Below, piece after piece: positions 1,020 to 56,936 of a stretch of 64,000 nt of DNA. The stretch lies in IMG/VR virus record IMGVR_UViG_3300005826_000294, positions 62,001 to 126,000 of that record; one strand, written 5' to 3'. The stretch's first letter is position 1. Each line of letters opens with the position of its first letter. Position numbers and translations under genes: made by a program. The notes beneath the pieces are model-generated. The model was not told where the DNA came from. It was given only the letters and a program-made list of their open reading frames with translations, and did no database searches.

Positions 1020-1354
1020 TTTTTCCTCTTAAATAATGGATATTTACATAAATCTAAAGTTCCATTTATGTTTAGAAACCAAACATCAGCATTAAGTCGT
1101 TTATCAATTACACCACTATAACCTGTATAACCATCATCATGCTTTATTGAAACTTGAATATATTTTTTATTAGAATATTTATCTTTATATTCTATAAAAC
1201 TTGCAACAACAGGATTTTTATTATTTAATTGATCTATAGAATTCCATTTATTTCCATTAACCAAATTATTATTTATCCATTTAACTGCTACCTTATTATA
1301 CGAAAGTTTGTCTCCAATTTCAACAAAAAATCTGCTAGAATTGAGAATTTTCAT
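1013..1354 (-). CDS. hypothetical protein
   Basis: Open frame; likely start is ATG at 1354 (AGAGG upstream, TAATG overlap with the upstream gene's stop) rather than 1396. Confidence 0.6.
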   Translation of the reverse strand: MKILNSSRFFVEIGDKLSYNKVAVKWINNNLVNGNKWNSIDQLNNKNPVVASFIEYKDKYSNKKYIQVSIKHDDGYTGYSGVIDKRLNADVWFLNINGTLDLCKYPLFKRKKC

Positions 1355-2301
1355 TAAAAAACCTCTTTGTATGCTTTTTTCATTATACTTTCCCATTTAA
1401 ACATATTAACAGATTTAAGACTATTCTTTATTATATTCTCTCTTTCAGTATCATGATTTAAATAATATTTAATTAAATCAACACAATCACATAAAGAATA
1501 AAACCATACAATATCTTTATGATTTGTAAAATAATTTTCAAGTTTAGGAATGTATTTTGTAATCATTAAATTTCCTGAAGCCATTCCTTCAATCATTCTA
1601 ATAGACCAATAATGTTCTATATTATTGAAATGATTAATATTTAATATTATTTTTGATTTATTATAAAAATCATTAATTTTAGGAAGACTAAAAAATCCTA
1701 AAATATTTTCTTTTGGGATGAATTTATCCCATCCATTTCCTAAAATCTTAATGTTAAAATGTTTTATTAAATAAGATATTATTCCAACTCTCTCAATTGT
1801 TCCGGGGAAACCACTATTTTTATAAACATTTCCAGCAAATACAATATCATATTCTTTATTAATGTTTTTTTTAAAAAATAATAAATCACTAAATCCTTCT
1901 TGTAATATTTTACAATTTAACCCATTTTTTTGATACTCATGTTTTCTTCCTTTTTGAAAGCAAACATCAACATATTTCCCAGCACTAATTGTATATTTAT
2001 CTAATTCATTTCTCATATCAACAGACATAAGAGATATTTTTATATTAGGATGTCTTTCTTTGACTACTTTAAAAAAATCAGGCAAAATAATTGGATTATA
2101 TTGATATTGACAAAAAATCCAGTCTGGTATATGTTCATCAATGAGTTGTAAAATTTGATAATGACCTTCTTTTTGTCCATATTTTCTTATAAATGATCTA
2201 TAACCAAAATAACCTGTTTCTATATCCATATTATTAAGACCATTAACCATTGATATCCCATTTTCTATATATTCAGTTGCTCCAATTATAAAAGTTTTCA
2301 T
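1354..2301 (-). CDS. CgeB-like GT-B glycosyltransferase (Glyco_trans_1_2 type)
   Basis: YDIVFAG...SKIILNINHFNNIEHYWSIRMIEGMASGNLMIT...LENYF; start at 2301 from ATGA overlap. Confidence 0.8.
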   Translation of the reverse strand: MKTFIIGATEYIENGISMVNGLNNMDIETGYFGYRSFIRKYGQKEGHYQILQLIDEHIPDWIFCQYQYNPIILPDFFKVVKERHPNIKISLMSVDMRNELDKYTISAGKYVDVCFQKGRKHEYQKNGLNCKILQEGFSDLLFFKKNINKEYDIVFAGNVYKNSGFPGTIERVGIISYLIKHFNIKILGNGWDKFIPKENILGFFSLPKINDFYNKSKIILNINHFNNIEHYWSIRMIEGMASGNLMITKYIPKLENYFTNHKDIVWFYSLCDCVDLIKYYLNHDTERENIIKNSLKSVNMFKWESIMKKAYKEVF

Positions 2302-3002
2302 AAATCTTTCCATTTTGTTATAATACAATTATGAGGATTTGTTTTTTCTATATTTTTATATTCTCCAATTAAAATAATATTACATCCACAACATAACGCA
2401 AAATCAACCAATCCACTCGGAGGAGATATTAAAAATTCAGAATTATTAAATACATTAATTTGCTCACTAATGTTATTTGTAAATTTAATATTTAAATCAA
2501 ATCTTTCTTTATAAAATCCATGTCCTATTATCTCTTTATTTTGATAGTTGGATTTAATCCATTTAATATGTTCTTTCATTTCAATGTTTTTTTTTGGTCT
2601 TATTGAACGTTTTCGCGGAAATATTGAGATATATCTTTTTACTTTATTTTGTTTTCCAAAAATAAGTTTTTTATTTAGAATATTAAAAACTTTATGAGTA
2701 TCATCATAAAAAAATTTATAATTAGGATCAATAGAAAAAAAGTGTTTAAACCCTTCTGTTTCAAGAAATTTTGTTGTTTCAACATGTCTAAAATGAGTAC
2801 AATCTCTATATTTTTCTTCTAGACTATATTTAACTATATTTTCTATATTTATCGTATCATATCTATTAGGCCATAATAAATTTATTAAATAACATACTGA
2901 TGGCCAAGTAACTAAACTAATATCAACAGTATTAATTTCAAGAAATGGAAGGAGTTGTCTAAAAATATATCCAAATTCTCCAAGAAAATAAAGTTTTTCC
3001 AT
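2298..3002 (-). CDS. putative GT-B glycosyltransferase (weak GT9-like), paralog of 7224-7928
   Basis: KLYFLGEFGYIFRQLLPFLE matches KLYFIGEYGFGFRQLFPFLE; C-terminal QINVFNNSEFLISPPSGLVDFALCCGCNIILI resembles the GT9 C-terminal lobe. Confidence 0.5.
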   Translation of the reverse strand: MEKLYFLGEFGYIFRQLLPFLEINTVDISLVTWPSVCYLINLLWPNRYDTINIENIVKYSLEEKYRDCTHFRHVETTKFLETEGFKHFFSIDPNYKFFYDDTHKVFNILNKKLIFGKQNKVKRYISIFPRKRSIRPKKNIEMKEHIKWIKSNYQNKEIIGHGFYKERFDLNIKFTNNISEQINVFNNSEFLISPPSGLVDFALCCGCNIILIGEYKNIEKTNPHNCIITKWKDL

Positions 3003-6094: not shown

Positions 6095-7227
6095 TTAATG
6101 TTTGGAACTATAATAGAACTATCTATTTTACTTTTAAATGGAATTAGATCTTTAAACATACTTTTTAGTTCTTCTAACATATCAGATGTAGGTTTATAAC
6201 CTAAATTTAAAAGAATATTATGATCAACATTATACTCATGATCTTCCTTTTCAATTCTTGGATTTTCTATATTTGAGATTGTTGTTTCAATTCCAAATTC
6301 TTTTGCTACAATAGAAACATTTTTAGCAAGTTCAGATAGATCATAAATCTCTTCAAATTGATTAATAATCCTATATTTACCATTTTTTGGAGGATTATCA
6401 ATAATAATAGAAATACATTGTATTGAATCTCTTAAAGGAAGAAATCCTCTTTTTTGATGACCTTTTCCAAATAAAGTAATAGGAAATCCTTTAATAGCTT
6501 GAACAACAAAACGATTAATTGCAGTACCAAAAATACCATCATAATCAAATCTTGTTTTAAATTCACTAAATTCTATGTCACCTATATTAGTACCATAAAC
6601 AACACCCTGCATAATATCAGTACAAGTTATTCCCCAAATACGATTAGCAAAATCTATATTTATACTATCATGAACTTTTGTAGCATGATAGAAACTTCCA
6701 GGAAGTCTAGGAAACATCACCCTATCTTTTTTATTTTTATATTCTATCTCAAAGAAACCTTCTGCGATAGGAATATTAGGAGTTCCAAATTCGCCCATTG
6801 AACCAAGCTTAATTAAATGAATTTCTGGACAAACTTCATAAATAGCATAAAGAAGTGATAAATTGCCAATAACATTATTAAAATGAGTAAAAGAAGCATG
6901 CTTAAAATCAATCATAGAATATGGTGCAGATGGAATTTGACCTAAATTTACTATAACATCAGGCTTAAATTTTATTAAAGCAGATTTGAGAAAATTAAAA
7001 TTAGTCATATCAAATTTTAATATTTCTATTTCTCCAATAAATCTGCGAAAAACTTTTTGTCTTTTTGATATAGAAGATATTGGAATTAAAGAATTTCCTC
7101 CAAATTTTTTTACAAATTTTCTTCTGCTTAAATTATCTATTCCAAATATCTTATGTCCTTTACACCCTAAAAATTGAGCTAAAGGCCATCCTAAATATCC
7201 ATCAATTCCACAAATTAAAACTCTCAC
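6082..7227 (-). CDS. sqdB: UDP-sulfoquinovose synthase
   Basis: GIDGYLGWP, GIDNLSRR, LIKLGSMGEFGTP, PGSFYHATKVHDS, TDIMQGVVYG, RFDYDGIFGTAINRF, QKRGFLPLRDSIQC; GTG start at 7227 (GTGA overlap). Confidence 0.9.
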   Translation of the reverse strand: MRVLICGIDGYLGWPLAQFLGCKGHKIFGIDNLSRRKFVKKFGGNSLIPISSISKRQKVFRRFIGEIEILKFDMTNFNFLKSALIKFKPDVIVNLGQIPSAPYSMIDFKHASFTHFNNVIGNLSLLYAIYEVCPEIHLIKLGSMGEFGTPNIPIAEGFFEIEYKNKKDRVMFPRLPGSFYHATKVHDSINIDFANRIWGITCTDIMQGVVYGTNIGDIEFSEFKTRFDYDGIFGTAINRFVVQAIKGFPITLFGKGHQKRGFLPLRDSIQCISIIIDNPPKNGKYRIINQFEEIYDLSELAKNVSIVAKEFGIETTISNIENPRIEKEDHEYNVDHNILLNLGYKPTSDMLEELKSMFKDLIPFKSKIDSSIIVPNIKWRK

Positions 7228-7928
7228 AAATTCTCCCATCTATCTATTTTACAACTATGATAATTTACCTTATCTAAAGTTTCATATTCATCAGTTAATA
7301 TAATATTACATCCACACATTAAACCTAAATCAGCCATTCCACTAGCAGGAGTTATAAATACCTCGGAATTATTTAATACATTTATTTGATGATAAATATC
7401 ACGACAAAAATCAATATTTAAATTAAATCTTTCATTTTCTAAACCATGACCCATAATTTTTTTATTTGGAAATTTATATTTAAGCCATTTTATATGATCC
7501 CTGCCTGTTATATTTTTATTAGGTTGAATTTTACGATTTCGTGGAAAAATGGAAACAAATTTTTTTTCTTCAAATTGCTCACCATACATTAATTTTGGTT
7601 TAACTAAATTATATACTTTTCTAACATTATCATAAAAAAATCTATTATTTTTATCAAAATTAAAACAATGAGAAAATCCCATTTCTATAAATTTTTTATT
7701 TATATTATCATCTCTATAATGATTACAATCTCTAAGACTTTCATTAATATTATTAATAAATAATTCTACAGAGATCATATTAAATCTTCCAGGCCATAAT
7801 ATATGTAAAATTCTAACTAGTGAATCCCAAGTTAGAATTTCAAGAGGCTTGTTATATTGTTCTAAAAATGGAAATAATTGCCTAAATCCAAAACCATATT
7901 CCCCAATAAAATATAACTTATCTACCAT
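7224..7928 (-). CDS. putative GT-B glycosyltransferase (weak GT9-like), paralog of 2298-3002
   Basis: Co-linear similarity to 2298-3002 (FVSIFPRNRKIQPNKN vs YISIFPRKRSIRPKKN; FITPASGMADLGLMCGCNIIL). Confidence 0.5.
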   Translation of the reverse strand: MVDKLYFIGEYGFGFRQLFPFLEQYNKPLEILTWDSLVRILHILWPGRFNMISVELFINNINESLRDCNHYRDDNINKKFIEMGFSHCFNFDKNNRFFYDNVRKVYNLVKPKLMYGEQFEEKKFVSIFPRNRKIQPNKNITGRDHIKWLKYKFPNKKIMGHGLENERFNLNIDFCRDIYHQINVLNNSEVFITPASGMADLGLMCGCNIILTDEYETLDKVNYHSCKIDRWENL

Positions 7929-9319
7929 TCTTTAAAACCAAGACGAACAGATAATTCTCTTACTCTACAAAAATAACTATGGTTTTTATTTACTATTTTT
8001 GATCCTTGTTTTCCTATTTCCTCTCGTTTTTCATTATTGTTCAAATAATATTCAAGTAAATCATAACATTCTTTTTCATCTTTAAACCAAACAAGATCTT
8101 TACCATTTTCAAAATATTCTTCCATTCCAGGAATATACGAACTTAATGTTAATGTCCCACAGGCCATTGCTATTAATTGGCGTTTAGAAAAATATTTATA
8201 TACATTATTAAAATTATTAATACTTATAATTATTTTTGAAGCATTATAAACTTCATTTTGTTTTAAATATGAAATGTAATTACTTGGACGATCCCGCCAT
8301 TTTCCATATAATTTAAACCTATCTCCATATTTTATTTGAAGATGATTAATAACTTTTTTTCTAAGATTAGTCCCAGGAAAATTATGAGAAATATTATTAG
8401 CACAAAAAACAATATCATGTTTATATTTCTTATATAATTTATTTCTTATTTCATCAGGCATTCTATAAAAAGCATTAACATTAACCCCAACTTGCCAATA
8501 ATCAACATTTAAACTCCCAGCTTTTCTATACATTTCAAGTTGTCCCTCACTAGAAATAAGTGCTTTATGTATATGTTTTGATATATTAACAAAATAAGGA
8601 ACAGCATACTCTCTAATATCTATTGTATTATTTGTTATTATTGTATTAGGTAAATTTTCTCTAATCTGTAAAATAGTTGTTGGATCAACAGTTTTATCAA
8701 AAAATTGTAACTGCATATGTATCCAATCTGGTTTAAATAATAATGCCTCAGATTTTATAAAATTTTGGAGTTTTTCTTTTCCAAAACAATCCATATATTT
8801 ATTAAAACAAATAGCTTTTACACTGAATCCATTATCTACAAAAGCTTTAGTAAGAGCCATTTGATTTATCTCTTTTGTAGTATACCTTAAAAACAAAACT
8901 TTTAGAGATCCATTTTTATAATCTTCAATAAAACTATGTGATTTTATAGGTATTTTTGAATTATTAATTATTACTTTTCTTATAAAAACAGATCCTGTTC
9001 CCTCTTTTCCTCGCCAAATCCTTAATTTTATTGGAATATCTTTAGAAAAATCTTCAGTTATAATATTTACATCAAATTTTTTCCAATTATTTTCACACAC
9101 CAATTTTGAATGAGGAAAATCATAATATTTATTCCCATAAAAATTACAAAATATTACACCATTACCACCCTTACAATAAATTTCTAATGTTAATCTATAT
9201 ATAGTATTTGGAATAACATTAATGGGAAAATATAATAATGATGTATTATTTATCATTAAAACTTCTTTATTCTTTAATGAAAAAAGACGACCTTTCCACA
9301 TAGAGCTAGAAATTTCCAT
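7922..9319 (-). CDS. CgeB-like glycosyltransferase with an extra N-terminal beta-rich domain
   Basis: C-terminal HDIVFCAN...SKIIISINNFNNVYKYFSKRQLIAMACG; first ~120 aa are similar to the N-terminus of 29847-31358. Confidence 0.8.
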   Translation of the reverse strand: MEISSSMWKGRLFSLKNKEVLMINNTSLLYFPINVIPNTIYRLTLEIYCKGGNGVIFCNFYGNKYYDFPHSKLVCENNWKKFDVNIITEDFSKDIPIKLRIWRGKEGTGSVFIRKVIINNSKIPIKSHSFIEDYKNGSLKVLFLRYTTKEINQMALTKAFVDNGFSVKAICFNKYMDCFGKEKLQNFIKSEALLFKPDWIHMQLQFFDKTVDPTTILQIRENLPNTIITNNTIDIREYAVPYFVNISKHIHKALISSEGQLEMYRKAGSLNVDYWQVGVNVNAFYRMPDEIRNKLYKKYKHDIVFCANNISHNFPGTNLRKKVINHLQIKYGDRFKLYGKWRDRPSNYISYLKQNEVYNASKIIISINNFNNVYKYFSKRQLIAMACGTLTLSSYIPGMEEYFENGKDLVWFKDEKECYDLLEYYLNNNEKREEIGKQGSKIVNKNHSYFCRVRELSVRLGFKEW

Positions 9320-9382: not shown

Positions 9383-10699
9383 TTATTTTTGTTCATCAAA
9401 ATCATTTTCCCAAATAAAAACAATTTTATATCCTGCAGTTTTTATTAAGTTTTCTCTTTTAATTGTATTTTCATAAAGAGTACCATATGTTTTTTTATTT
9501 ATAGGATTTATTTCATTTTTGCTATAAATTTTTGGATTCCCATGCCAAAAATCACCATAAAATTCATAAACTATATTTTCAATTAATGCATCAACATAAA
9601 ATTTCTTTTTATTTATAATAATACAAATTTCTCTATTAGATAAATCTATATTTAGTCGGTCTAGCCATAAATTACATTTTTTTGATGAATTTAAATGTTT
9701 TACACAAACTGGACATCCAGCAATCTGACTTCTACTATTAACAGTGGCAAACCAAGAATGATTATTTTTACACTTCCACCACACTTTCTTTGAACTATGT
9801 GGAGTAACATCATATGGAGTTATAGAATTTTTTTTAAAATCCCACTCTAATGCTAAATCTGGGTTTATTGTAAATAAACAATTATCAATACAAACTTTTT
9901 TATTTGAACAATATGGACAATTTGTTCCAAAACTGCGATGGCTCACTGAAGTCTTCCAAGAATGGTTGTTTTTACATTTCCACCAAATTTTTTTTGAACT
10001 ATATGGGGTAACATCATGTGGAGTTATAGAGTTTTTTATATAATCCCACTCTAATACTAAATCTGGATTTATTGTAAATAAACAATTATCAATACAAACT
10101 TTTTTATTTGAACAATATGGACATCCATCTTCACGACATGTTCTATTACATAGAGGAGAATACCAAGAATGATTATTCTTACATTTCCACCAAACTTTCT
10201 TATTAGATTTACTATGAATCATAGAGGGTAAAATTATATTTTTATTATAGTCCCACTCACATAATAATTCTGGATTTCTTATTTTTAAATTATTTATATC
10301 ATTTACAATCTTGCCAGAACAACATGGGCAACCATGATTAGTTCTACTATTTGGAGAATTTTTCCACTCGTATCCACATTTACATTTCCACCAAACTTTT
10401 TTGTTGCTTTTTGCTGTAATTTCATTAGTCTTAATTATATTTTTTTTGCTCCACTCCTTGGCAAGATTATGAGCTTTTACTAATAAAGAATTTTCCAAAC
10501 ATACACGCTGTCCAGAACAATATGGACATCCATCCCCACGAGATATTCTTTTATCAATTGGTGCAAACCAAGAATGATTATTTTTACATTTCCACCAAAC
10601 TTTTTTTGAACTTCCGATTGTAATGTTTTCTGGAAAAATATTATTTTTTATAAAGTCCCACTCACTTACAATACTAAACTCCGAAACCTTAGGTTTCAT
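9383..10699 (-). mobile_element. zinc-ribbon repeat protein with C-terminal PD-(D/E)xK/Vsr-like nuclease; probable free-standing homing endonuclease
   Basis: Five KK[VI]WWKC...W...CP.C repeats; C-terminal FYVDALIENIVYEFYGDFWHGNP...GYKIVFIWE. Confidence 0.75.
9841..10123. repeat. 79-bp direct repeat (9841-9919 and 10045-10123), 204-bp offset
   Basis: Manual alignment shows 2 mismatches in 79 nt. Confidence 0.9.
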
Positions 10700-12878
10700 T
10701 ATCTTCTTCCTTTTTAGAATTTACACCTAAAAGTTTACAATCATAATCTACCATACGTTTAACTAACTCTTCAAACTTTACTTTAGGTTCCCACCCAATA
10801 AGTTCTGTTGTTTTAGAATAATCTCCACAGAGATCATTTACTTCGGCAGCTCGCATATAAAACCTATCAATTTCTACATAATCTTCCCAATTTAATCCAA
10901 CATGACCAAAAGCAATTTCGCAAAACTCTTTAACTGAGTGAGTCTCTCCCGTTGCAAATATATAATCATTTGGTTTAGGTTGTTGAAGAGTCATAATAAA
11001 ACCCTCACAATATTCTTTGGCTAACCCCCAATCTCGTCTTGCATTTAAATTACCCAACTTTAACTTAAAACTTGGATTTTTAAGAGCCTGTGCTACACCC
11101 ATAGATATTTTTCTAGTTACGAAATTTGGGCCTCTTCTCCCCGGTTCTTCATGGTTGAACGTTACTCCAGCACAACAATACATATTATATGATTCTCTAT
11201 ACAATCTTATAAAATGATGACTAGCAACCTTAGCTATCGCATATGGACTTTGTGGCATATAAATAGTTTCAGTATTTTGAGGAGCAGGAGAAGAACCAAA
11301 CATTTCACTAGTATTGTGAACTAAGATTGGAGACACACCACAATACCATTTTTCAGTATCCTTAACTGAAAAATCACCAACACGCTGATGTATATGAAGT
11401 TTTTCTATTTGTTGTATTTTTTCCATATTAATATCTGAATTTTCAAAATGGCACAAATTTTCTCCAGAGATATTTTTTATATTAATATCTTTCTTTTGTA
11501 TTTTATAACTAGAGAAGTTATGTAACTCATCCTTTGAAATTATAATATCCCAAACTAAAGAATCTTTAGTTAGTATTTGTTGTGGCAATAAGAATGATTT
11601 AACAAATCTATTATGTAAATGCCCACCAATACCAATTAATCTTAATAACCATAATATATCAATTGCCAAATCCTTATATATAGTTGTATATTTTATTTCT
11701 CTTTCATCTATTTTAGCGCCTCCTAAATAACCATTTAAAAAAGAAATCTTTACACTTGTTGAAGATTCATATAATTCACTAGGTAATCTTTTAGAATGAG
11801 AATTATTTTCAGCATATTTAGAAAAAAAAGAACAAATTTTTCTTTTACATATGGACACTTGAGTAGAATTTTTTTTAATCCTAATATTACTCTTATATTT
11901 AAAATATTTTTCAATTATATTTTTAGTTTCTTCTGATCTATTACAATTAAAAGCATGGTTGCTAAATGTTAAAGTTATACTTTCATTTCCATGACTTTTA
12001 GAATAATATCCTTCTGCCATATAAATTCCTAATAAATATGCTATTTCTTCATTTAATAAAATACTTTCATTAAATTTACTATTTAAAATTTTAGTTCCCT
12101 TATTTCGCTCTACTTTATGTTTTAAAAAAAAATCCCATTTTAGTTTCTTATATTTATCATGTTTGTAAAAATCTTCTTGATTACAAAAAGTTATTAAATG
12201 GTCACCAACAGATAAATCCGAAACTTTAGTTTCAACAAACCTATTATTATATAAAGTAATCAAAGAATGATCTGGAGTCACAATTAAATCTTTTCCCCCA
12301 GAAAAACTAATTTTATAAACTTGTTTAAATCCATGATCAACAACATCCATTACTTGCTTAAAACATGTTTTTCCATCATTATCAGCTGTTAAAACCTCAA
12401 ACGAATTATGTTCGCCCTTCTTCCATAAATTAAAAGCATTTTCTAATGTAGTTCTATTCAACACTCCATTATATTTAATTAATACCGGAGTATTAAAAAC
12501 TATTGAACTCGCATGAAAAATTCTTGTAGAATAACCTAACAATTTAATACTTTCTAAAATATTAACAACTCCTTTTGTATCGATATCTAATGTAGCTAAT
12601 GGTTGTTCAAAACTCGTATGAACGTGAGACATTGCTGCCATATTATATAATTCATGAGGACGAGTATCTCGAACGATGCGTAACATTGAAGACATATCAG
12701 TAATATCACCTTCAAAAATATCAATCTTATTTTCCAAATGAACTACATTGCCAAAATTATTGGTTGCATTTCTTCTCATTACACCAATTACATTATATTC
12801 CTTTTCTAATAATAAATCGGCTAATAAACTTCCATCTTGGCCACAAATTCCTATTATTAATGCAGTTTTTTTCTTCAT
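10689..12878 (-). CDS. gmd: GDP-mannose 4,6-dehydratase interrupted by an intein
   Basis: GICGQDGSLLA, YNMAAMSHVHTSF, IFHAS[intein]TSEMFG, PQSPYAIAK, FNHEEPGRRGPNFVTRKI, LGNLNARRDWG; spliced length 331 aa. Confidence 0.95.
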   Translation of the reverse strand: MKKKTALIIGICGQDGSLLADLLLEKEYNVIGVMRRNATNNFGNVVHLENKIDIFEGDITDMSSMLRIVRDTRPHELYNMAAMSHVHTSFEQPLATLDIDTKGVVNILESIKLLGYSTRIFHASSIVFNTPVLIKYNGVLNRTTLENAFNLWKKGEHNSFEVLTADNDGKTCFKQVMDVVDHGFKQVYKISFSGGKDLIVTPDHSLITLYNNRFVETKVSDLSVGDHLITFCNQEDFYKHDKYKKLKWDFFLKHKVERNKGTKILNSKFNESILLNEEIAYLLGIYMAEGYYSKSHGNESITLTFSNHAFNCNRSEETKNIIEKYFKYKSNIRIKKNSTQVSICKRKICSFFSKYAENNSHSKRLPSELYESSTSVKISFLNGYLGGAKIDEREIKYTTIYKDLAIDILWLLRLIGIGGHLHNRFVKSFLLPQQILTKDSLVWDIIISKDELHNFSSYKIQKKDINIKNISGENLCHFENSDINMEKIQQIEKLHIHQRVGDFSVKDTEKWYCGVSPILVHNTSEMFGSSPAPQNTETIYMPQSPYAIAKVASHHFIRLYRESYNMYCCAGVTFNHEEPGRRGPNFVTRKISMGVAQALKNPSFKLKLGNLNARRDWGLAKEYCEGFIMTLQQPKPNDYIFATGETHSVKEFCEIAFGHVGLNWEDYVEIDRFYMRAAEVNDLCGDYSKTTELIGWEPKVKFEELVKRMVDYDCKLLGVNSKKEEDNET
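11313..12506 (-). mobile_element. intein (398 aa) with degenerate LAGLIDADG endonuclease
   Basis: Starts SIVFNTPVL, block B TPDH, block C YLLGIYMAEGY, block E FLNGYLGGAK, block F VGDFSV, ends LVHN followed by Thr. Confidence 0.93.
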
Positions 12879-13811: not shown

Positions 13812-14639
13812 TTAAAAAATTTCATGACTAATAATAACTTTTGGATCTCCCCAAATATGATCTGTATTTGCTATATAATTATAATTTTTTAAATTTTCTC
13901 GCATTAATAAAAGATTTTTATCTCTCATTTCTTTTTCTGTGTATCGTAAAATATGTTTTTTTGTATTTAAATTTGAATGATCTTGATGAATTCCAATTAT
14001 ATTATGTTCAAAAACAGGAGTAACTCCAAACATTTTCATTCGATTAGAAAAATCATCATCTTCAGCACAAAACCCTTCACCAAATCTTTCATCTATTCCT
14101 CCTATTTTTTCTACATATTCTTTCTTAACAACACAAAAATAATAATAAGCAGGTGGATGAGGAGGTCTAGTTAAACAATTATTTTTTGCACCTGGAAGTT
14201 TTAATAAACCATCAAATGATTTATTCCAATTTTTATTGATAATATCAATAAAAATACTATTTGACTTATATACTAATCCATATCCACATTGTTTTCTATT
14301 AATAAATGAAGATGCTACTTTTATATTATTTTTATTTTGAAGGGTTTCTGGGCCAGTTATACAAACAATATTACTTCTAGCCATTCTCATTCCAACATTA
14401 TTACTTAATACAGGAGTAAATGTTGTAATTGGAACATCACATTTAGAATTATCTATTTGAATATATTGGAAGTTTAAGTTAGGATAATTATTACATAATT
14501 CTCTTATATCTTGCCTATTTCCATCATCAATAAGAACGAGTTCAAAATCTTTTTCTGTTTGATTATTCCAAGTATCAAGAGCGCGATTAAAATAAGAAAA
14601 TCTATTATCACATAAAGATATTACCACTGAAACTTTCAT
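13812..14639 (-). CDS. GT2-family glycosyltransferase, paralog of the C-terminal domain of 29847-31358
   Basis: FELVLIDDG, NNVGMRMARS, GGIDERFGEGFCAEDDDF; shared ITGPETL and GIHQDH motifs. Confidence 0.85.
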   Translation of the reverse strand: MKVSVVISLCDNRFSYFNRALDTWNNQTEKDFELVLIDDGNRQDIRELCNNYPNLNFQYIQIDNSKCDVPITTFTPVLSNNVGMRMARSNIVCITGPETLQNKNNIKVASSFINRKQCGYGLVYKSNSIFIDIINKNWNKSFDGLLKLPGAKNNCLTRPPHPPAYYYFCVVKKEYVEKIGGIDERFGEGFCAEDDDFSNRMKMFGVTPVFEHNIIGIHQDHSNLNTKKHILRYTEKEMRDKNLLLMRENLKNYNYIANTDHIWGDPKVIISHEIF

Positions 14640-27604: not shown

Positions 27605-28260
27605 ATATTTCTCCTAAAAATAAATGTTCCCATTTTATATGTTTTATCATGCCAAATATCTTCTTTTTTTAATTCAAATCCTTCTTTTTTTAATATTTTA
27701 TTTAAATCATCTCTTCCAATATAAAATCTAATATCAGGTATTTTATTATATGTTTTTACTTGTTCAATTTTTGTTTTATCATCTGTAATAAATAATCTAT
27801 GAGATATAAACCATTTATTTGCACTTTTAAGCATATTTTTAAATGCCTTTTCCCAATTATGAATAAGTTCTAATACTGCAGATTCCATAACAATATCATA
27901 TTTTTTAATAGCGTTTATATCACATATATTTTTTATATAAAATTTACCATTTGTAAAATTTTTTTTAGCAATATTACACATATTTTTAGAAATATCATAT
28001 CCAATATATTCTAAAGGCGGAATTAATCCCTTTTTTTGTAAATAAATAGCATGCCAGCCCGCTCCACAGCCAACATCTAATAAGGTTTTATTATTTTTAT
28101 CATTTTTTATTATCCATTCAAAAGCTTCATATAATTTAAAAAATGCTTCATATTTTTCAAAGTCACCAGAATCAAAATAAGATTTATTTAATTCATTATG
28201 AGCATCAGCTATTTCTTTTAAAGTCCAATCAGCTGAAATTATATTTTCAGGAACTTTCAT
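27601..28260 (-). CDS. class I SAM-dependent methyltransferase
   Basis: LLDVGCGAGW, YIGYDIS, YDIVMESAVLELI. Confidence 0.88.
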   Translation of the reverse strand: MKVPENIISADWTLKEIADAHNELNKSYFDSGDFEKYEAFFKLYEAFEWIIKNDKNNKTLLDVGCGAGWHAIYLQKKGLIPPLEYIGYDISKNMCNIAKKNFTNGKFYIKNICDINAIKKYDIVMESAVLELIHNWEKAFKNMLKSANKWFISHRLFITDDKTKIEQVKTYNKIPDIRFYIGRDDLNKILKKEGFELKKEDIWHDKTYKMGTFIFRRNI

Positions 28261-29014
28261 AATAGTTCTCCATTATATCATTTATATGTTTAATCCATTT
28301 TTCAAATTCTAACGTTCCTTTTCCACTATTACATATTTTACAACATGAAACTAAATTATTTTCTATATATCCTTTTGAATTATCAATTCTATCTAAATTT
28401 ATAACATTTGTAATAGTTCCACAATAAAAACAAGGTTTTCCTAAAAATGATTTAAATTCTTCAAATGATATTAAAAATTCAAAATTTCTTCTTGAAGCAC
28501 TATAAATATAATTTTTAAATTGTCTATTTAATCCATAATTATATTTATGTTTATAATTATATTCAATTTTTCTTAAAGTTTTATATCTGATAAAATTTTT
28601 AAGTTGACATATATAATCATTCCAATCTTTAATTGTTTGATTATTTTTTAACTTATTACAAATAATACAACAAGAAACTACGTTATTATAATAATATCCA
28701 AGATTATTATCTATCCTGTCTAAACTAATTGTTTCTATCTCATTACTACAATAAAAACATGGTTTATTCCAAAATGTTTTAAACTCTTTAAATGATATTG
28801 AAAAAATAATATTTCTTTCTTTCGCTTTTGTTTTATATTTACTAAATTTACCATTTATAGTTTTAGAATATAATTTTGCTTTTTTATTATTTTTTTCTTT
28901 ATTTTTGTAATAATGTAATCTACTTGCTTCTCTTCCACAATCTTTACACCAAGAACTTTTTGGATAAAAATTACAACTATTTTTTTCTAATTTACATTTA
29001 CTACATTTTTTCAT
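28247..29014 (-). mobile_element. duplicated HNH/His-Me-finger-like endonuclease; probable free-standing homing endonuclease
   Basis: N-terminal CSKC...WCKDC; two copies of KPCFYC...LDRIDN..GY...N.VSCC..CN..K. Confidence 0.75.
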
Positions 29015-29847
29015 AATTTTCCAGATATAGATAATTTCATTAATTCAAAATAAGGGTCATATATTATTTTTTTATCACTTTGAGTATGTTTCCATCCAGT
29101 TGGATAATAAGAATTTTCTAATATTCGAAACTCATGGTAATGATAACAAATAAGATTATATTTATCATTTACTATTAATTTATTATTTTCTTTTGTAATT
29201 TTATATTTGGCAATATTCCATGGTCCCATATTTATACCAGGATGTGGACAAGAAAGATGATTTTGAAATTTATTAGGAGTATCATATAAAATATTTAAAT
29301 ATCCCTGATCTGCACACATTCCATTTGGTAATGTTTCCCATTTACACCATTCTAAACATCGTTCTTTCCACCATAAAAGAAATTCTTTACAATAATTATC
29401 ATTTCGATATCCTAATATCCCAACATTAAATCTAACACCAGATCTTGGTGGTTCAAATCCATGGTCTACAACCATCAAAGAGTAATCCCCCATAACTTGT
29501 TCTATTTCATTTGGATCAGACCAAAAAGCAATGTCGGCATCAGTATAATATAATGTATTTATATAGCTAAAATTATTAAAGATATATAAAGGTAATATTG
29601 GAGATATAGTTGCATAATATTCTTTTAATAATCTTGTATGTTTAATAGTAACAAGTTCTGGAAATTGATTTTCTAAATCTTTTAATTTAATTAGTATTAC
29701 ATTATTTAATTTAGAAGAAATATTATAAACATTATCATCTAAACATAATATAAATAATATACTATTTTTATCTTGTTTATGAAGAGTATAATTACAAACC
29801 AAACCTTTATTAAAATAATTAGAATCAAAATATGTACAAAAATACAT
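29011..29847 (-). CDS. GT-A glycosyltransferase (GT8-like), paralog of 40872-41735
   Basis: CTYFDSNY, LCLD, YYTDADIAF, FNVG, WWKERCLEWC, DQGYLN, LICYHY. Confidence 0.75.
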   Translation of the reverse strand: MYFCTYFDSNYFNKGLVCNYTLHKQDKNSILFILCLDDNVYNISSKLNNVILIKLKDLENQFPELVTIKHTRLLKEYYATISPILPLYIFNNFSYINTLYYTDADIAFWSDPNEIEQVMGDYSLMVVDHGFEPPRSGVRFNVGILGYRNDNYCKEFLLWWKERCLEWCKWETLPNGMCADQGYLNILYDTPNKFQNHLSCPHPGINMGPWNIAKYKITKENNKLIVNDKYNLICYHYHEFRILENSYYPTGWKHTQSDKKIIYDPYFELMKLSISGKL

Positions 29848-31358
29848 TAGAACGTCTCCACTTTTATTATTGCATTTTCAGAACCCCAATCTATATGTTC
29901 ATTTGCTACTGGATTTTTATATTTTATCCATTCATGTAAAAAATTAGTATTTATAGTTCTTAATCTTTTCCACTCTCTTTTATCATATCTAAAAGAATGT
30001 AAATCATTTTTATCATTTCTTGTATGATCTTGATGAATTCCAACTATTCTATGTTCTCTAATAAGTGGAACTCCAGAAAAAGACATTCGTAAAGCAAAAT
30101 CATCATCTTCACCAGTTATTCCCTTCATAAATTTTTCATCAACTCCATTTATAGCAAGAATATGTTCTTTACGAACTGCAATATAATACCACCACCATCC
30201 AAAAGTTACTGAAGGATCTGCTTTTGCTCCGGGAATTTCTAAAATATTATCAAAATCCATATATTTTATATTTATTTTTTTCACTTCATTAACAAATTTT
30301 TCTGATGATCTAAAAACATCACCGTAAACACAATATCCTTTATTTGCCATTTCCCATGATATTTTTAAATTATCTTCTTTTATAAGAGTTTCTGGCCCAG
30401 TTATAACAGTTACAGATCCTCGACTATGTTTTAATCCAATATTATTACTTAATGCTGGCACAAATGATGCTGGTTTAATTGCTCCTTTTTGATTATCAAT
30501 TAATATATATTTAAATTGTAATCTATATTCTCTTGAAAATTGTTTACATAAACCTAAAATATTATCTTTACTTTTATCATCAATAATAACTATTTCAAAT
30601 TCTTTTTTTGGTAAAGTTTGTTTTATATATGTTTCAAGAGTTCTTCTAAAAAATCCAATTCTATTATAAATTGAAATAAGAATAGAAACTTTTATACCAT
30701 CTTCTCCAATAACTACTGGTAAAATTTTAGGAGGAGGAGTTGCTACATCAATTCTTGTTGGTAATGTAACAGGTTTATTTTTCTTTCGTTTCGGTACTTT
30801 TATTTCTTCTTTTGCTTGTTTAGCTCTTTCTTTTTTTTCTATTTTAGGGTTTTTTACCATTTTTTGAGCAGGGCGCTGAGGAGGTTGCTTATATTCTGCA
30901 GGATTTGGGGATTTGGGACCAAATCCATCAATAGAAATAACTTTTCCTATTGTGTTAATATTATCTACAGGACCCTCTTCAAGTTGAACAATTATCTTAC
31001 GTACTAAAATACTACCACTTCCTTCACTACCTCTCCATATCCTAAAAACCATAGGAACAGTTTTAGGAAAATCTTTTGTTATTACATCAACATCAAATGT
31101 TGTCCAATTTCCATTTTCACATAAAATTTTTGAATGATGAAAATCATAATTTCTGTTTCCATATAAATTACAATATATTATTCCATTTCCACTTTCTCTG
31201 CATAGTTCTAATGTAACTTTATAAACAGCATTTGGTAAAATATTTACGGGAATATATAACAGTGATTTAGGACCAACCATAGCTGTGTATTTTCGTCCAT
31301 TAGAGTCTTTTCTACTGTTAATTGAACGTCCTCGCCAAGATGGTTGAAATATTTCCAT
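29847..31358 (-). CDS. GT2 glycosyltransferase with shared N-terminal domain and Lys/Pro-rich linker
   Basis: C-terminal ILISIYNR, EIVIIDD, NGVDEKF...GEDDDF; N-terminus similar to 7922-9319. Confidence 0.85.
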   Translation of the reverse strand: MEIFQPSWRGRSINSRKDSNGRKYTAMVGPKSLLYIPVNILPNAVYKVTLELCRESGNGIIYCNLYGNRNYDFHHSKILCENGNWTTFDVDVITKDFPKTVPMVFRIWRGSEGSGSILVRKIIVQLEEGPVDNINTIGKVISIDGFGPKSPNPAEYKQPPQRPAQKMVKNPKIEKKERAKQAKEEIKVPKRKKNKPVTLPTRIDVATPPPKILPVVIGEDGIKVSILISIYNRIGFFRRTLETYIKQTLPKKEFEIVIIDDKSKDNILGLCKQFSREYRLQFKYILIDNQKGAIKPASFVPALSNNIGLKHSRGSVTVITGPETLIKEDNLKISWEMANKGYCVYGDVFRSSEKFVNEVKKINIKYMDFDNILEIPGAKADPSVTFGWWWYYIAVRKEHILAINGVDEKFMKGITGEDDDFALRMSFSGVPLIREHRIVGIHQDHTRNDKNDLHSFRYDKREWKRLRTINTNFLHEWIKYKNPVANEHIDWGSENAIIKVETF

Positions 31359-31366
31359 TAGTTAAA

Positions 31367-33604
31367 TTACTCCCTATTTTTAAATAATAAATTATATAAA
31401 TGATTAATATTGAAATTATTTGCTTTTTCTCTTGCCGCACGAGATACTGTTCGACAATTAAAAGAACATTTTTCTAATAATTTCCTATTGTTCTTGAATT
31501 TTTGAATTTCTCGAATAAATAAAGCAGGATTGTTTGAATTCCAAACCAAACTACCAGTAATTCCATCAAATACTATCTCCGAAATGGCTCCTACATCTGA
31601 AGCAATAACTGGAACTCCAGCCATCATTGCTTCCAAAATAACAAGAGGCATTCCCTCCATGGTTGAAGGAAGAATTAATAAATCAAAAGTAGCATAAAAC
31701 TCTTCAACATTGTCTTTTGATCCAATAAAACACACATTGTTTAATTGCTTCGCCATTTGTTCTAAAGGTTTTCTTTGAGGCCCGTCTCCAACAATTACAA
31801 AAGAAGCATCTGGAATTACTTTAGCACAATATAATATAATAGGAATATTCTTTTCAGGAGATAATCTTCCAACAAAACCTATAGTAAAATTTTCATTTAA
31901 TTTTTTCTCAACATTAAATCTTTCCCAATCAATTTGTTGAGGAAGAACAGCAACATTCTTATTACCATCTTTTAATAACTTTCTCCCCATCTTATTTGAA
32001 ACAGCCGTTATTAATGTAACATGTTCTCCGCGAGATGAAACTTTATTCATAGAATCATTCCAACTTAATTCGCTATGAACTGTTTCTACAATTCTACGCC
32101 TAAAACCTTGCTTCCATGCTTCTTGAATAACTCTATATACTCCAAAACTATTATAAAAATGAATTATACTATAATTTTCAGCTTCAATAAGGCATTTTAA
32201 TGCTTTATCTCTTCCCGAAGATGATAAATCCTCTATAATAACTCCCATATCTTTCAAAGATTGTTTAAACTTTTCTTCAGTTCCAGATATTAAAGCTACA
32301 TGAGGTTCATAAATTGATTTATTTAATTGAGAAATTGCTTGCTTAATCCATATCTCACCACCACCAACCATTTTATATGGAATAATATATAAAACTTTTC
32401 TTTTTATAGAAAGTTTTTTTGGAATAGGAAGATCTAAAATCATTTGAGCAGCATTTTCCCAAGAGAATTTTTTAACAATCTCTCTGGCTGGATTTTTAAT
32501 CCTCTTCAACTCCTTATCAAGATTTTTATAAGAATGATATAATAATTCTTTAAAATTTTCAATACTAGGATCTCCTACAACAGCACCTTTCATAACTCCC
32601 CAATACTGCATAGAATTTGGAGCTTCCATTTCTCCTGTATCAACCAATAAAGAATTATCATCATTTAAGAAATCTAATTGTCCTCCGTGTCTTGGAGCTA
32701 TAACCAATTTTTCGCAAGCTAAGGCCTCAAGAAGAGGTAAGCAAAAACCTTCCGTAGCACTCATACTAATAACTACATCACAAGCAGTATATAATGCTCC
32801 CATACTTGGAATAAATGTATTTACAACTTCAATCTCAGGAGGATTTTTCTTTCCTTTAAGATTATTTTCAATAATGGATTTTACATCAACTTCAAAAGGC
32901 TTAGTTTTATCAGGAGTTATAAATTGGGTTTTTAAAACTAAACAAACATCATCTTTGCTTGTGAATGTCTCAATATAACCTTTGATTACCCTTTCATGGA
33001 GTTTTCTATGGTGAGGAATAGCATTATGAAGGAATTTTACTTTTTTGTTTGTTTTTAATTTAAAAGGAGTAATATTGGGATTGAAAATAGTTTGATCAAC
33101 ACCATGAGGGACAATTAACATCTTATTTTTAGGAACACCATTATTAGCAAAAATATCATATGAAAATTGGCTTGAAGGAAGAATATAATCTATTGCCCTG
33201 CTATAATACTGCCATCCAGGAGGTAATACCGAACTCTCAAAGTTCCATATGGCCGCTTTACATTTGGACTCAGGAAAGAAACGCCTTGGATATTGATAAA
33301 ATATTGTATATGCTAATTCTAAATCATAAGGTCTGTTTTTGTCTTCAATTTCGGGTTTAGGTTGTTCTTTTGTAACAATAATCTCATTACCTTGCCCATC
33401 AACATATTCCGTGGGACCTTGAACCAAATGCCCATGATAACCAGAAAGTAAAATATCTTTTAAATCTTCAGGAAAATATTCTAATCCATTTGTGGATTTA
33501 AAATATATTTCATGTTCGGTTTTCTTCATTGCTCTGGCCAATGCTTGAGCTGTATAACTCCACGAATGGTTAGTTGCTCCCATTGTATGCCATCTTACTT
33601 TCAT
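31367..33604 (-). CDS. tandem two-domain GT4 glycosyltransferase
   Basis: First domain EGFCLPLLEALAC; second FVGRLSPEKN...EGMPLVILEAMMAGVPVIASDVG. Confidence 0.92.
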   Translation of the reverse strand: MKVRWHTMGATNHSWSYTAQALARAMKKTEHEIYFKSTNGLEYFPEDLKDILLSGYHGHLVQGPTEYVDGQGNEIIVTKEQPKPEIEDKNRPYDLELAYTIFYQYPRRFFPESKCKAAIWNFESSVLPPGWQYYSRAIDYILPSSQFSYDIFANNGVPKNKMLIVPHGVDQTIFNPNITPFKLKTNKKVKFLHNAIPHHRKLHERVIKGYIETFTSKDDVCLVLKTQFITPDKTKPFEVDVKSIIENNLKGKKNPPEIEVVNTFIPSMGALYTACDVVISMSATEGFCLPLLEALACEKLVIAPRHGGQLDFLNDDNSLLVDTGEMEAPNSMQYWGVMKGAVVGDPSIENFKELLYHSYKNLDKELKRIKNPAREIVKKFSWENAAQMILDLPIPKKLSIKRKVLYIIPYKMVGGGEIWIKQAISQLNKSIYEPHVALISGTEEKFKQSLKDMGVIIEDLSSSGRDKALKCLIEAENYSIIHFYNSFGVYRVIQEAWKQGFRRRIVETVHSELSWNDSMNKVSSRGEHVTLITAVSNKMGRKLLKDGNKNVAVLPQQIDWERFNVEKKLNENFTIGFVGRLSPEKNIPIILYCAKVIPDASFVIVGDGPQRKPLEQMAKQLNNVCFIGSKDNVEEFYATFDLLILPSTMEGMPLVILEAMMAGVPVIASDVGAISEIVFDGITGSLVWNSNNPALFIREIQKFKNNRKLLEKCSFNCRTVSRAAREKANNFNINHLYNLLFKNRE

Positions 33605-34500
33605 TTATTTCTCCTTATATCACACATTCTTAATTTCTTATCAATTGTAATTTTAGCACAACCGAATTTTTCTGCTATTTGTTTTCTTGTTAGTTTTTGA
33701 ATAATATATAAATTATATAGAGTTTCTTTGGAAATATCTATTTTATAATTTATTTTTCCAATGGGATTAAGATCCCATTTATATGATAAAGATTTAAAAG
33801 GAGGCTTGCCGATATATTCTAATAATAAAGGAACAGAGGTTTTAGGAATAAATATCCTATAATCTTTCTTATAATTCATAACAGATGATTTTATTTGTAT
33901 TTCTTTGTTTAACTTATAAGAAAGAAAATTTATTTCATTATAACTAAAACAATCAGTACAGAAAATAGCATATTCTTTATTAGGAAGAGAACCATCTCCT
34001 AAATACCAATGAAGAACAAGATTTGGGGAAATTTTTAAATCAGGAATTATCTTCTTTCTATTTATATACCACTTTTTTTCTAACTCTTCAAACTGTATAG
34101 AACAATGCGTTGAAAATATATATCTTGTATACCATTTGTTCCAGTTCTTATGATAATATCTTTCTTTTTGAATACTATTATTAACTAATGGTATATTGCT
34201 ATCCTTAAAAAAATTAGAAAGCCATACAGCATAATCTTCCTTGCAACTAGAAAAACAAAACTTAGCTTGATGTGTTCTTTTAGTTAAAGATCCATCTCCC
34301 AATAATTCTCCCTCTATTCTTTGTATTATCTCTTTATTAAGAGGATAATTATTTTGTTTTGCTAATCTCAAACCCTCTCCAGATGTCCTTAACTTCGTAT
34401 TCTTTAACAAAATTTTTCTAGTTTTTGATGGAGAAATTCCAACTTTCTTTGCTATTTGACGAATAGAGAATCCTTTCTTATAAAACTCTACAATTCTCAT
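33601..34500 (-). mobile_element. free-standing LAGLIDADG homing endonuclease with terminal HTH-like segments
   Basis: IEGELLGDGSL and VLHWYLGDGS; GFSIRQIAKKVGIS and LTRKQIAEKFGC; ATGA overlaps on both sides. Confidence 0.88.
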
Positions 34501-39793: not shown

Positions 39794-40900
39794 TTAAAGT
39801 ATATTTACTCTAAAACGTTTTATATATTGCCCACCTTCTTGATATATAATTCTTCCTTGAAATGAAACATCATTAGATCCTGAATCACCATCTTGATATA
39901 ACCCTGGATAACCATAAACACCATTTGATCCAGGAGTTCCAGCCGGTCCATTTGCTGCTGATTCATCACAACCACTAACACCTCCTGTTGATCCATCATA
40001 ACCATTCATACCGCCTCCACATCCAGCACCACCTAATCCTCCTGGTCCACCTATTCCATAAGAACCAGCAGAACCACCATCTGCATCTCCACCAATTCCT
40101 GGTTCTCCACTTGAATAAGATGATGAATTTATTGAAAACCATGAACTTGTTGGCCTAGAAGATTCAATAACTATATTTCCTCCATTTCCTCCATTCCTTC
40201 CAGCTCCACCAGTTCCTCCAGCTCCTCCACTTGTAGCACAGCCTCCTGATCCACCAGTTCCACCATTTCCACCATTATAAGAACCTAAATCACAATCAAT
40301 ACTACAAGCAGCATCACCTCCATTTCCTCCATTTCCTCCATTTCCTCCATTTCCTCCATTTCCTCCATTGGCATTCCCACCATTTCCACCATTACCACCA
40401 TCTGATTCTATATTTCCAAGTATAACTTCTACAGAAGATAAAGTAAGATCTCCTCCATTTCCAGCATATCCTCCACCTAAAGCAATTCCGCCATTTGTTG
40501 GATAACCACCAAATTCACCACCCCCACCACTTCCGCCATTTCCTCCACCACTACAAAAGACAGCATCAATCCCATTAGCTCCATTAGTTCCATTGGCCCC
40601 ATTAGTTCCATTAGTTCCATTAGAACTACTACCAGTTCCACCATTATATCCTTTTGTACTTATAGTATTTCCAACACTATATATTTTTCTAATAGCATTA
40701 ATTTCACAATCATTAGAATATCCATTAACATTAGCATGTATATATGCTTCAATACAATTTATAGAAAAATTACTTATAATCGTAGTAGCAGATGATATTG
40801 TAAATATCCCAACATTTATATGAACTCCACCTATATTTCCACCAGAAAAAGTCCAATCATCTCCTCCATGATCACCCCCACCAGTTGCAGTCCAAGTCAT
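39794..40900 (-). CDS. glycine-rich (GGN/GxN repeat) virion-associated protein
   Basis: GTNGTNGANGTNGANG, (GGN)n runs, scattered Cys. Confidence 0.6.
40321..40365. repeat. perfect 9-bp tandem repeat x5 (CATTTCCTC), encodes GGN
   Basis: Read directly. Confidence 0.95.
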
Positions 40901-46341: not shown

Positions 46342-46352
46342 TTATTATTCTC

Positions 46353-53264: not shown

Positions 53265-53266
53265 TT

Positions 53267-56503: not shown

Positions 56504-56504
56504 A

Positions 56505-56936
56505 TTAAGCCACCCTCAAAGTGAAAGTATCTTCCAGTATTGTTAATTTTCTGGTCAAAACAGATATTTTTATTTCATATAGTCTTGGGTCTTCATTGTT
56601 TCGTAGAACAGAAACCCCTCTAATAGATGCTATTGCTTCTCCAGCCGATATATATTGAGTTCTTCCTTGTACTTTTTGTAATGCTACTAAATTATTTAGA
56701 GCTGTTTGTACAGATCTCGCTACTTCGGTTTCTAATTGAGTAGGATCAAGTAGATTACCAATAATACGAGTTCCAAGACTACTACCATACCAACGAAAAA
56801 TTTTATTAGAACCTGCGGATGTTAATATGATTTTAAGAATATCTTGAACAAGTTTTTCATTATCATGAACTGTTTGTAATGTTCCATCAGGATTTATTCC
56901 CAGATCATTATTGACGATTTTTAAGTCATAAGACAT
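56505..56936 (-). CDS. gp25/gpW-like baseplate wedge (sheath initiator) protein
   Basis: MSYDLKIVNNDL, KLVQDILKIILT..GS...WYGS, EAIASI..V; directly upstream of baseplate J. Confidence 0.8.
   Translation of the reverse strand: MSYDLKIVNNDLGINPDGTLQTVHDNEKLVQDILKIILTSAGSNKIFRWYGSSLGTRIIGNLLDPTQLETEVARSVQTALNNLVALQKVQGRTQYISAGEAIASIRGVSVLRNNEDPRLYEIKISVLTRKLTILEDTFTLRVA

Follow-up and report, generated by a model that had tools for sequence, protein, structure and literature searches.

A jelly-roll module resembling carbohydrate-binding modules at the N-terminus of two different glycosyltransferases in an uncultured huge phage

Introduction

Why would two glycosyltransferases with different catalytic domains carry the same N-terminus? 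The question is raised by a stretch of 64,000 nucleotides (the window) that comprises bases 62001–126000 of the 301.7-kb IMG/VR virus record IMGVR_UViG_3300005826_000294, the estimated completeness of which is 75%. Two proteins encoded on the minus strand of the window, P0001 (465 amino acids, 7922–9319) and P0002 (503 amino acids, 29847–31358), begin with a similar segment of about 120 residues, referred to here as the module. Both open reading frames are present as described in a first-pass annotation of the DNA, which proposed that the module is a jelly-roll resembling a carbohydrate-binding module (CBM) and that it targets enzymes to a shared acceptor or scaffold.

Carbohydrate-binding modules are the classic appendages of glycan-degrading enzymes. 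The glycosyltransferases known to be guided by a CBM are few (the GalNAc-transferases, the starch synthases and TarS), and each of them changed the understanding of substrate selection.

Results and Discussion

Identification of the Shared Module

P0001 was compared with P0002 using BLASTP. A single significant segment was obtained, in which residues 1–125 of P0001 align with residues 1–131 of P0002 (62 of 131 positions identical, 47%; E 3e-41). No similarity was detected by BLASTP for the remainder of the two proteins (all E > 0.1). The segments of these proteins and of their relatives within the window are as follows.

8960–9319, minus strand: module copy 1, residues 1–120 of P0001 (BLASTP; family profile E 4.7e-51); a divergent copy with a tree branch of 0.83 and a linker of 10 residues behind it
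7922–8932, minus strand: catalytic part of P0001, residues 130–465; GT-B type, PF13524 Glyco_trans_1_2 (2.2e-23) with a weak PF00534 match (9.5e-6)
30978–31358, minus strand: module copy 2, residues 1–127 of P0002 (structure models; family profile E 2e-70)
30714–30977, minus strand: linker of P0002, residues 128–215, basic and Pro/Lys-rich by composition; disorder predicted for residues 149–210
29847–30713, minus strand: GT2 (GT-A) catalytic domain of P0002, residues 216–503; PF00535 Glycos_transf_2 (2e-11) with a PF02709 match below threshold
1354–2328, minus strand: PF13524 paralogue without the module, 35% identical over 254 residues to the catalytic part of P0001 (E 4e-35)
13812–14639, minus strand: GT2 paralogue without the module, 38% identical over 291 residues to the catalytic part of P0002 (E 5e-61); it starts directly at the catalytic domain

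The family profile detects the module exactly twice in the 301.7-kb record. An additional strand (residues 139–146 of P0002) falls within the conserved block, which ends near residue 142. The catalytic part of P0001 shares 42–52% identity with its counterparts in those GT-B proteins of related phages that also bear the module. No match to the module was obtained with Pfam, PHROGs or NCBIfam, permissive thresholds included (for Pfam, none at E ≤ 1), and PF02018, the CBM_4_9 model, is silent on the whole record.

The sequence features given in the first-pass annotation were confirmed by these comparisons. The N-terminus is common to both proteins, their fusion partners (PF13524 of the GT-B type and PF00535 of family GT2) are unrelated, and the module had indeed escaped annotation. 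The sister catalytic domains at 1354–2328 and 13812–14639 lack it, and the linker of the GT2 protein is rich in lysine and proline (16 and 15, respectively, of the 88 residues).

Exchange of Catalytic Cassettes behind the Module

The history of the module was reconstructed from a tree of 67 copies (127 columns, quick IQ-TREE), of which the well-supported (starred) branches alone were relied on. Modules linked to GT2 domains interleave in this tree with those linked to GT-B domains; 11–13 changes of label are required, at least 4–5 of which are forced by well-supported branches. The module of P0002 shares 82% identity with that of the GT-B enzyme P0003, versus 47% with that of the GT-B enzyme of its own genome.

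The site of exchange is located by nucleotide comparison with related contigs. In L006, L007, L008, L012 and L016, collinearity with the window extends over a gene for a double GT4 glycosyltransferase and a P0002-like module. The homology with L007 (73% nucleotide identity) stops at window position 30933, which corresponds approximately to residue 142 of P0002. Past the breakpoint, homology in all five contigs switches to the catalytic part of P0001 (window 8737–7960). The same slot in L009, L010, L013 and L014 is occupied by the module followed by a GT2 cassette and its downstream genes. The module is therefore the constant 5' part of the slot, and the catalytic domain is an exchangeable cassette. 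As placed by these alignments, the exchange breakpoint is at the start of the linker, just past the module, and the module is one that has moved between GT-A and GT-B enzymes.

The linkers of most members are 60–96 residues long. Their sequence is unconserved, yet they are steadily rich in proline, lysine and arginine and are mostly highly basic. The linker of P0001 is exceptional (10 residues, not basic). In the full-length model of P0002, the module is confidently predicted over residues 9–127 together with the strand at 139–146, residues 149–210 have a predicted local distance difference test score (pLDDT) below 50, and the pLDDT of the GT-A domain is about 90. The predicted template-modelling score (pTM) of 0.59 fits two independently placed domains. 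The linker of P0002 is thus predicted to be disordered, and a flexible tether is present in most members. The identities of the module and the catalytic domain are 61 versus 55% for proteins of the GT2 type and 47 versus 47% for those of the GT-B type. Because the module is as conserved as the catalytic domains, it is under strong constraint.

Fold and Ancestry of the Module

An alignment of 21 homologous N-termini has a mean column identity of 65% and 21 invariant positions, which include Y35, Y46, Y66, F73, W85, F97, W108, N58, N64, D72 and R106. The AlphaFold2 model of the module (pLDDT 87, pTM 0.80) contains ten β-strands. The model was compared exhaustively with 48,161 representatives of the PDB using VIA-align, and dozens of structures matched with Z values of 11–13.2 and root-mean-square deviations of 2.4–3.0 Å over 112–128 aligned residues. 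The matches include a porphyran-binding CBM, CBM22, CBM15, CBM36, CBM35, CBM4, CBM6, CBM16 and other glycan-binding jelly-rolls. A group-1 glycosyltransferase of Tupanvirus is also among the fold matches (rank 19, 22% identity). A Foldseek search returned E values of 1e-8 to 1e-5, with CBM4-2, CBM16 and CBM22 at a probability of 1.00 and the first two near the top. The structural neighbours of the module in the ESM Atlas carry CBM_4_9 or DUF642. The jelly-roll, CBM-like fold anticipated in the first-pass annotation is therefore borne out by the structure prediction and Foldseek search that it had recommended, and by the profile comparisons that follow.

The distant tail of an exhaustive search of 1.84 billion representative proteins consists of large proteins, and PF02018 is found in 11 of 25. 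When the matched stretches themselves were scored, 7 of 10 gave PF02018 at E < 0.01, and 4 lie above the Pfam cut-off. The profile of the module aligns with the PF02018-matching stretches in hhalign with a probability of 98.7% (E 1.9e-16, 97 columns). One protein of this CBM_4_9 tail, P0098, is encoded in an ordinary bacterial chromosome context.

As judged from the models and the profile comparisons, the module is a divergent offshoot of the CBM4/9-type β-jelly-roll superfamily that current libraries miss; it is neither a new fold nor a member of PF02018 as presently modelled. The fold is common to the module and to CBM4, CBM9, CBM16 and CBM22 (PF02018, galactose-binding-domain-like), and the homology to CBM_4_9-positive domains is at the profile level. 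CBMs of the CBM4/9 type and the module have the core motifs PVNV.P..Y..T, GN..FD, W, FP and R.W in common. Unlike those CBMs, the module escapes the Pfam model, has glycosyltransferases and not glycoside hydrolases or lyases as its partners, is cytoplasmic and is strictly N-terminal. Since current libraries miss the module, the family merits a profile model of its own.

Family Members and Their Partners

The family is small, with 80 representative clusters at E ≤ 1e-3 and 46 at 1e-10 among the 1.84 billion proteins. In all family members proper (P0001–P0070) that match over nearly the full length, the start of the module lies no further in than the first ~25 residues, and tandem N-terminal copies occur in at least seven proteins. 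The fusion partners were listed for 48 close members using Pfam. PF00535 is found in 24 and PF13524 in 15; the remaining Pfam partner matches are to glycosyltransferase families, except for one fn3 and one weak DUF3880. The close members with no Pfam match are mostly short fragments. Some family proteins have two or three catalytic modules behind one N-terminal module. The family profile and partner list, which had also been suggested as a check, thus identify glycosyltransferases as the only recurrent class of partner.

A tblastn search of 50,697 GenBank phage records with the module gave no match. One further locus only was found in IMG/VR with the family profile, and 12 loci, one per contig, were found in metagenomes. 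All of the genomic contexts examined are from the same kind of huge phage with the same gene order. Genes for proteins of 2150–2300 and ~950 residues are followed by variable fibre-like genes, then by glycosyltransferases including the module-bearing one, and finally by sugar genes. The pair of large proteins lies ahead of the glycosyltransferases in L003, L019, L022 and the contig of P0062.

The Phage and Its Glycan Gene Cluster

The GC content of the window is 23–30%, and the minus strand holds nearly all of the genes, with overlapping stops and starts. The reading frame at 53267–56503 encodes a baseplate wedge protein (phrog_6, 4e-40; Baseplate_J, PF04865, 2e-23), and that at 56505–56963 has a weak match to a sheath initiator (29 bits, below the Pfam cut-off of 32.9 bits). 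Tail-fibre PHROGs are matched by several neighbours of the baseplate genes. On the basis of the baseplate protein, Bacillus phage G is the closest isolate (29% identity), and the related contigs reach 452–461 kb. To judge from these genes, the source is an uncultured huge myophage of the Caudoviricetes, with a contractile tail, that is distantly related to Bacillus phage G. An origin from a giant virus was considered in view of the GC content of 25%, the inteins and the large sugar cluster; it was ruled out by the baseplate wedge/Baseplate_J, sheath-initiator and tail-fibre proteins and by phage G as the nearest isolate. The capsid model PF04451 of the nucleocytoplasmic large DNA viruses has no match, and its controls are equally silent, so this blank is uninformative. 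The features surrounding the module-bearing genes are as follows.

237–33604, minus strand: glycan gene cluster of ~33 kb (Pfam matches and hydrophobicity scan)
31367–33604, minus strand: double GT4 glycosyltransferase of 745 amino acids (Pfam), found immediately or a short distance upstream of the module-bearing gene in most of the relatives inspected
43495–56963, minus strand: conserved tail genes upstream of the glycan cluster, encoding the sheath initiator, the Baseplate_J/wedge protein (1078 amino acids), a 2303-residue protein with a ConA-like lectin domain and a 948-residue protein

The synteny of the double GT4 gene is seen in L003 (with a methyltransferase gene between), L019–L020, L022 and L007. 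The sugar genes of the cluster identified with Pfam encode GDP-mannose 4,6-dehydratase (GMD), split by an intein, and further GDP-sugar epimerase/reductases. An RmlA-like nucleotidyltransferase, an RmlB-like dehydratase, an FdtA isomerase, a DegT aminotransferase, a SIS-domain protein, a kinase/nucleotidyltransferase and a HAD-nucleotidyltransferase are also encoded, together with three methyltransferases, a radical-SAM/SPASM protein and a GSCFA protein. The cluster contains at least nine glycosyltransferases. In the related clusters, a sulfotransferase is encoded by L003 and a GT29 sialyltransferase-like protein by L019.

No transmembrane segment was predicted in any protein of the cluster by the hydrophobicity scan, and the cluster has no recognisable flippase, polymerase, lipid-carrier-priming transferase or ABC exporter. 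Because the cluster is without membrane proteins, assembly of the glycan is expected to be cytoplasmic. Membrane-linked export of polysaccharide, of the Wzx/Wzy or ABC type, was considered and set aside on the same grounds, although a carrier might be supplied by the host.

Comparison with Known Glycosyltransferases

The nearest solved enzymes by sequence to the catalytic domain of P0002 are TarS of S. aureus (5tz8, E 4e-7), GalT1 of Streptococcus and β-1,4-galactosyltransferase 1 (β4GalT1; C-terminal part). The nearest by fold are the chondroitin polymerase K4CP, GlfT2, TarP, TarS and RmlT. These neighbours are enzymes that elongate or decorate polymers on the cytoplasmic side. No solved sequence relative was found for the catalytic part of P0001.

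In the polypeptide GalNAc-transferases, the lectin domain recognises sugars that were added earlier, and long-range preferences are set by the linker (PMC5716993). P0002 is alike in logic to these GT27 enzymes, having a GT-A domain connected to a lectin-type domain through a flexible linker. The combination of PF00535 with a weak PF02709 match, found in P0002 and in several homologues, is also the catalytic signature of the GalNAc-transferase class; in P0002, PF00535 is present and PF02709 scores 19.4 bits, below the 23-bit cut-off. The lectin of the GalNAc-transferases is a C-terminal ricin-B (CBM13) β-trefoil, whereas the phage module is an N-terminal jelly-roll with no sequence kinship to it. 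P0002 contains no ricin-B domain and does not have the GT27-type architecture of PF00535, PF02709 and a C-terminal ricin-B domain.

TarS is, like P0002, a GT2 enzyme that decorates a polymer in the cytoplasm and has CBM-like domains attached, and the catalytic domains of the two are related. The CBM-like domains of TarS constitute a trimerisation domain that adds avidity and processivity (PMC5156392). They are Ig-like (CBM48/68-like) and form a C-terminal tandem at the trimer core, whereas the phage module is a CBM4/9-type jelly-roll at the N-terminus, on a long disordered tether. P0002 has no C-terminal tandem of Ig-like CBM48/68 trimer domains, and its kinship with TarS is limited to the catalytic domain.

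The full-length model of P0002 aligns in Foldseek over ~500–517 columns with GlfT2, the galactan polymerase of mycobacteria and Nocardia, versus 245–335 for other GT2 enzymes; with a low template-modelling score of 0.30–0.32, this is a lead only. GlfT2 is absent from the top structural matches of the isolated module. The structure of GlfT2 published in 2012 reportedly has an N-terminal β-sandwich domain ahead of the GT-A domain. GlfT2 is a tetramer (PMC7168186), has a C-terminal helical domain and is associated with the membrane.

Virus-encoded glycosyltransferases and sugar pathways are likewise found in the systems that make the capsid and tail glycans of mycobacteriophages and in the fibril clusters of giant viruses. 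Viral enzymes of this kind plausibly act on virion components, according to work cited in PMC12619734. No description of a CBM-type module on viral glycosylation enzymes was found in the literature searched.

Proposed Function of the Module

The proposed function is the tethering of soluble glycosyltransferases to their acceptor or to a glycan. From the fold, the partners, the portability, the tether and the cytoplasmic cluster, this function is judged the most likely one, with about an even chance. The ligand of the module would be a sugar epitope, either on the glycan built by the ~33-kb cytoplasmic cluster or on a glycosylated acceptor. Catalytic domains of different fold and specificity would thereby be tethered to the same polymeric acceptor, and the outcome may be a raised local concentration, avidity or processivity, and ordered assembly. 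Because the module is self-contained, a new cassette can be placed behind it by recombination at the linker, which would diversify the glycan while docking is kept. By analogy, the logic may be comparable to that of the lectin and linker of the GalNAc-transferases (PMC5716993) and of the CBM-like domains of TarS (PMC5156392).

The target of glycosylation could be a virion fibre, another phage product or a host polymer reached via host carriers; the virion is suggested by the gene neighbourhood only. In a more specific form, which is put forward tentatively and is somewhat unlikely to hold in full, the module would belong to a lectin-guided assembly line in huge phages. The primer glycan that it reads would sit on a fibre or baseplate protein of the virion and might be the work of the neighbouring double GT4 enzyme, and GT-A and GT-B cassettes would be swapped behind the module to vary the sugar coat of the virion. 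Of the portable targeting module that had first been proposed, the portability stands (partners that are glycosyltransferases only, an interleaved tree, alternative cassettes at one slot and a disordered linker); docking on a glycan, virion protein or scaffold is plausible only.

Several observations weigh against a glycan-tethering function. PF02018 (gathering score 25.9 bits) has no match at E ≤ 0.01 in the whole 301.7-kb record, and control genomes do match. When the sequences of the PDB were searched directly with the profile of the module, an E value of only 0.08 was reached for CBM4-2, below significance. The invariant G67-N68 ... [F/Y]71-D72 loop of the module aligns in that match with G106-N107 ... 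F110-D111 of CBM4-2, in which residue 110 is the specificity residue according to PDB titles; in the other direction, this loop is a weak pointer to a conserved binding site. A CBM fold is itself no proof of sugar binding, since the same fold makes protein–protein contacts in toxins and in the receptor-binding proteins of phages. G001, which is 79% complete, has one copy of the module, and each relative contig has one locus; the arrangement of two enzymes on one acceptor may thus be an exception. P0001, the second copy in the window, combines almost no linker with a long branch and may work differently.

If the jelly-roll binds a protein instead, it could dock on a structural or scaffold protein of the phage, such as the ~950- or ~2300-residue tail protein encoded upstream, and deliver the enzymes to the protein awaiting glycosylation. 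In every case the baseplate and fibre genes ahead of the glycan cluster are the same, jelly-rolls of the CBM-like sort often occur in the tail proteins of phages and in toxins, with some of them binding protein, and a cluster devoid of membrane-associated or lipid-carrier machinery suits a soluble or protein acceptor. Gene adjacency is, however, the sole link to such a partner. The nearest sequence relatives of the module are CBM_4_9 domains of bacterial carbohydrate-active proteins, and its tandem duplication is typical of avidity for repetitive glycans; docking on a protein is accordingly regarded as unlikely. Oligomerisation is a less probable function still. The module would then assemble the glycosyltransferases into homo- or hetero-oligomers, with acceptor binding secondary, as could be expected from TarS, which among solved enzymes is closest in sequence to the catalytic domain of P0002 and whose CBM-like domains both trimerise and raise processivity (PMC5156392), and from the tetrameric GlfT2 (PMC7168186), which aligns over ~500 columns with the full-length model. 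The TarS domains differ from the module in fold (Ig-like, CBM48/68-type) and in position (C-terminal), an oligomeric core needs no long disordered linker, and no positive sign of self-association was seen.

The basic linker invites yet another explanation, which is considered very improbable. Linker and module might keep the enzymes attached to the DNA of the phage, whose bases would be hypermodified with glycans, or to an anionic polymer, with a minor or regulatory part for the jelly-roll. The linkers of most members are rich in lysine and arginine and highly basic, phage glycosyltransferases that decorate DNA are known (cited in PMC12619734), and the sulfotransferase and sialyltransferase-like enzymes of the related clusters suggest anionic glycans. 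The conserved element is the jelly-roll and not the linker, however, and P0001 is without a basic linker. Methylated, aminated 6-deoxy sugars and at least nine glycosyltransferases far exceed known DNA glycosylation, and the cluster adjoins tail genes.

CBM-guided glycosyltransferases are themselves a known, small kind. New here are a phage-restricted family of the CBM4/9 superfamily, its unusual N-terminal position and the documented exchange of cassettes. A compact and strongly conserved module has been moved repeatedly between GT-A and GT-B enzymes, in a phage glycan cluster that rivals those of giant viruses in size. Should the module bind the nascent glycan, it would be a tractable handle for finding what these uncultured phages glycosylate, an example of diversification of viral surface glycans by cassette exchange, and a small natural docking domain for tethering engineered glycosyltransferases to a chosen acceptor. 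If a lectin-guided assembly line exists, it would represent the first description in a virus of glycosylation directed by a CBM, with glycan diversification built in.

Additional Features of the Window and Its Relatives

The GMD gene (10689–12878, minus strand) contains an intein (PF14890) at residues 168–522, and its orthologue in L022 (717 residues) is likewise intein-bearing. A free-standing LAGLIDADG homing endonuclease (33601–34500, minus strand) is encoded between the fibre genes and the double GT4 gene. The double GT4 protein of L019 (6391–9996 of this 461-kb relative; 1201 residues) has a LAGLIDADG_3 match, which suggests an intein or an endonuclease insertion. Directly upstream of P0001, a 438-residue protein (9383–10699, minus strand) contains five DUF4379 treble-clef zinc-finger repeats (E 1e-85) and is possibly a mobile element of the nuclease type. 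The 255-residue protein at 28247–29014 (minus strand) has two internal repeats with Cys-rich, HNH-like motifs. Its absence from the syntenic position in L019–L021 makes insertion of a selfish gene probable.

Two 234-residue paralogues (7224–7928 and 2298–3002, minus strand; 47% identity, E 1e-82) have no family match. Both PF13524 glycosyltransferases have one of these paralogues as a neighbour, a pattern that points to duplication of a two-gene unit. In the 452-kb relative L003, a gene of the tubulin family (PF00091, 21427–22073) is located at the end of the glycan cluster.

Pieces of the stretch 29000–31047 are matched at 100% identity by five short contigs (151–250 nucleotides) from two metatranscriptome libraries of estuary origin. 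The presence of the phage in estuarine samples follows from these matches; since DNA may be present in libraries of this type, they are no proof of transcription.

An island with a GC content of 45–62% (35300–37700), compared with 23–30% for the genome, is located in the variable fibre-gene region inside the reading frame 34766–37732 (minus strand). This frame encodes a 988-residue protein rich in serine, threonine, glycine and alanine, of which the island covers the N-terminal two thirds. The protein has no match in Pfam, PHROG, NCBIfam or GenBank phages. Recent acquisition of a receptor-binding protein, or a chimera made during assembly, may account for it. A 368-residue protein (39794–40900, minus strand) consists mostly of Gly/Asn (GGN) repeats, the GC skew of its gene is –0.5 to –0.6, and the protein is probably part of a fibre. 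Upstream of the baseplate genes, a 669-residue protein (58600–60609, minus strand) with five hydrophobic segments is probably a tape-measure protein or a membrane-active tail protein.

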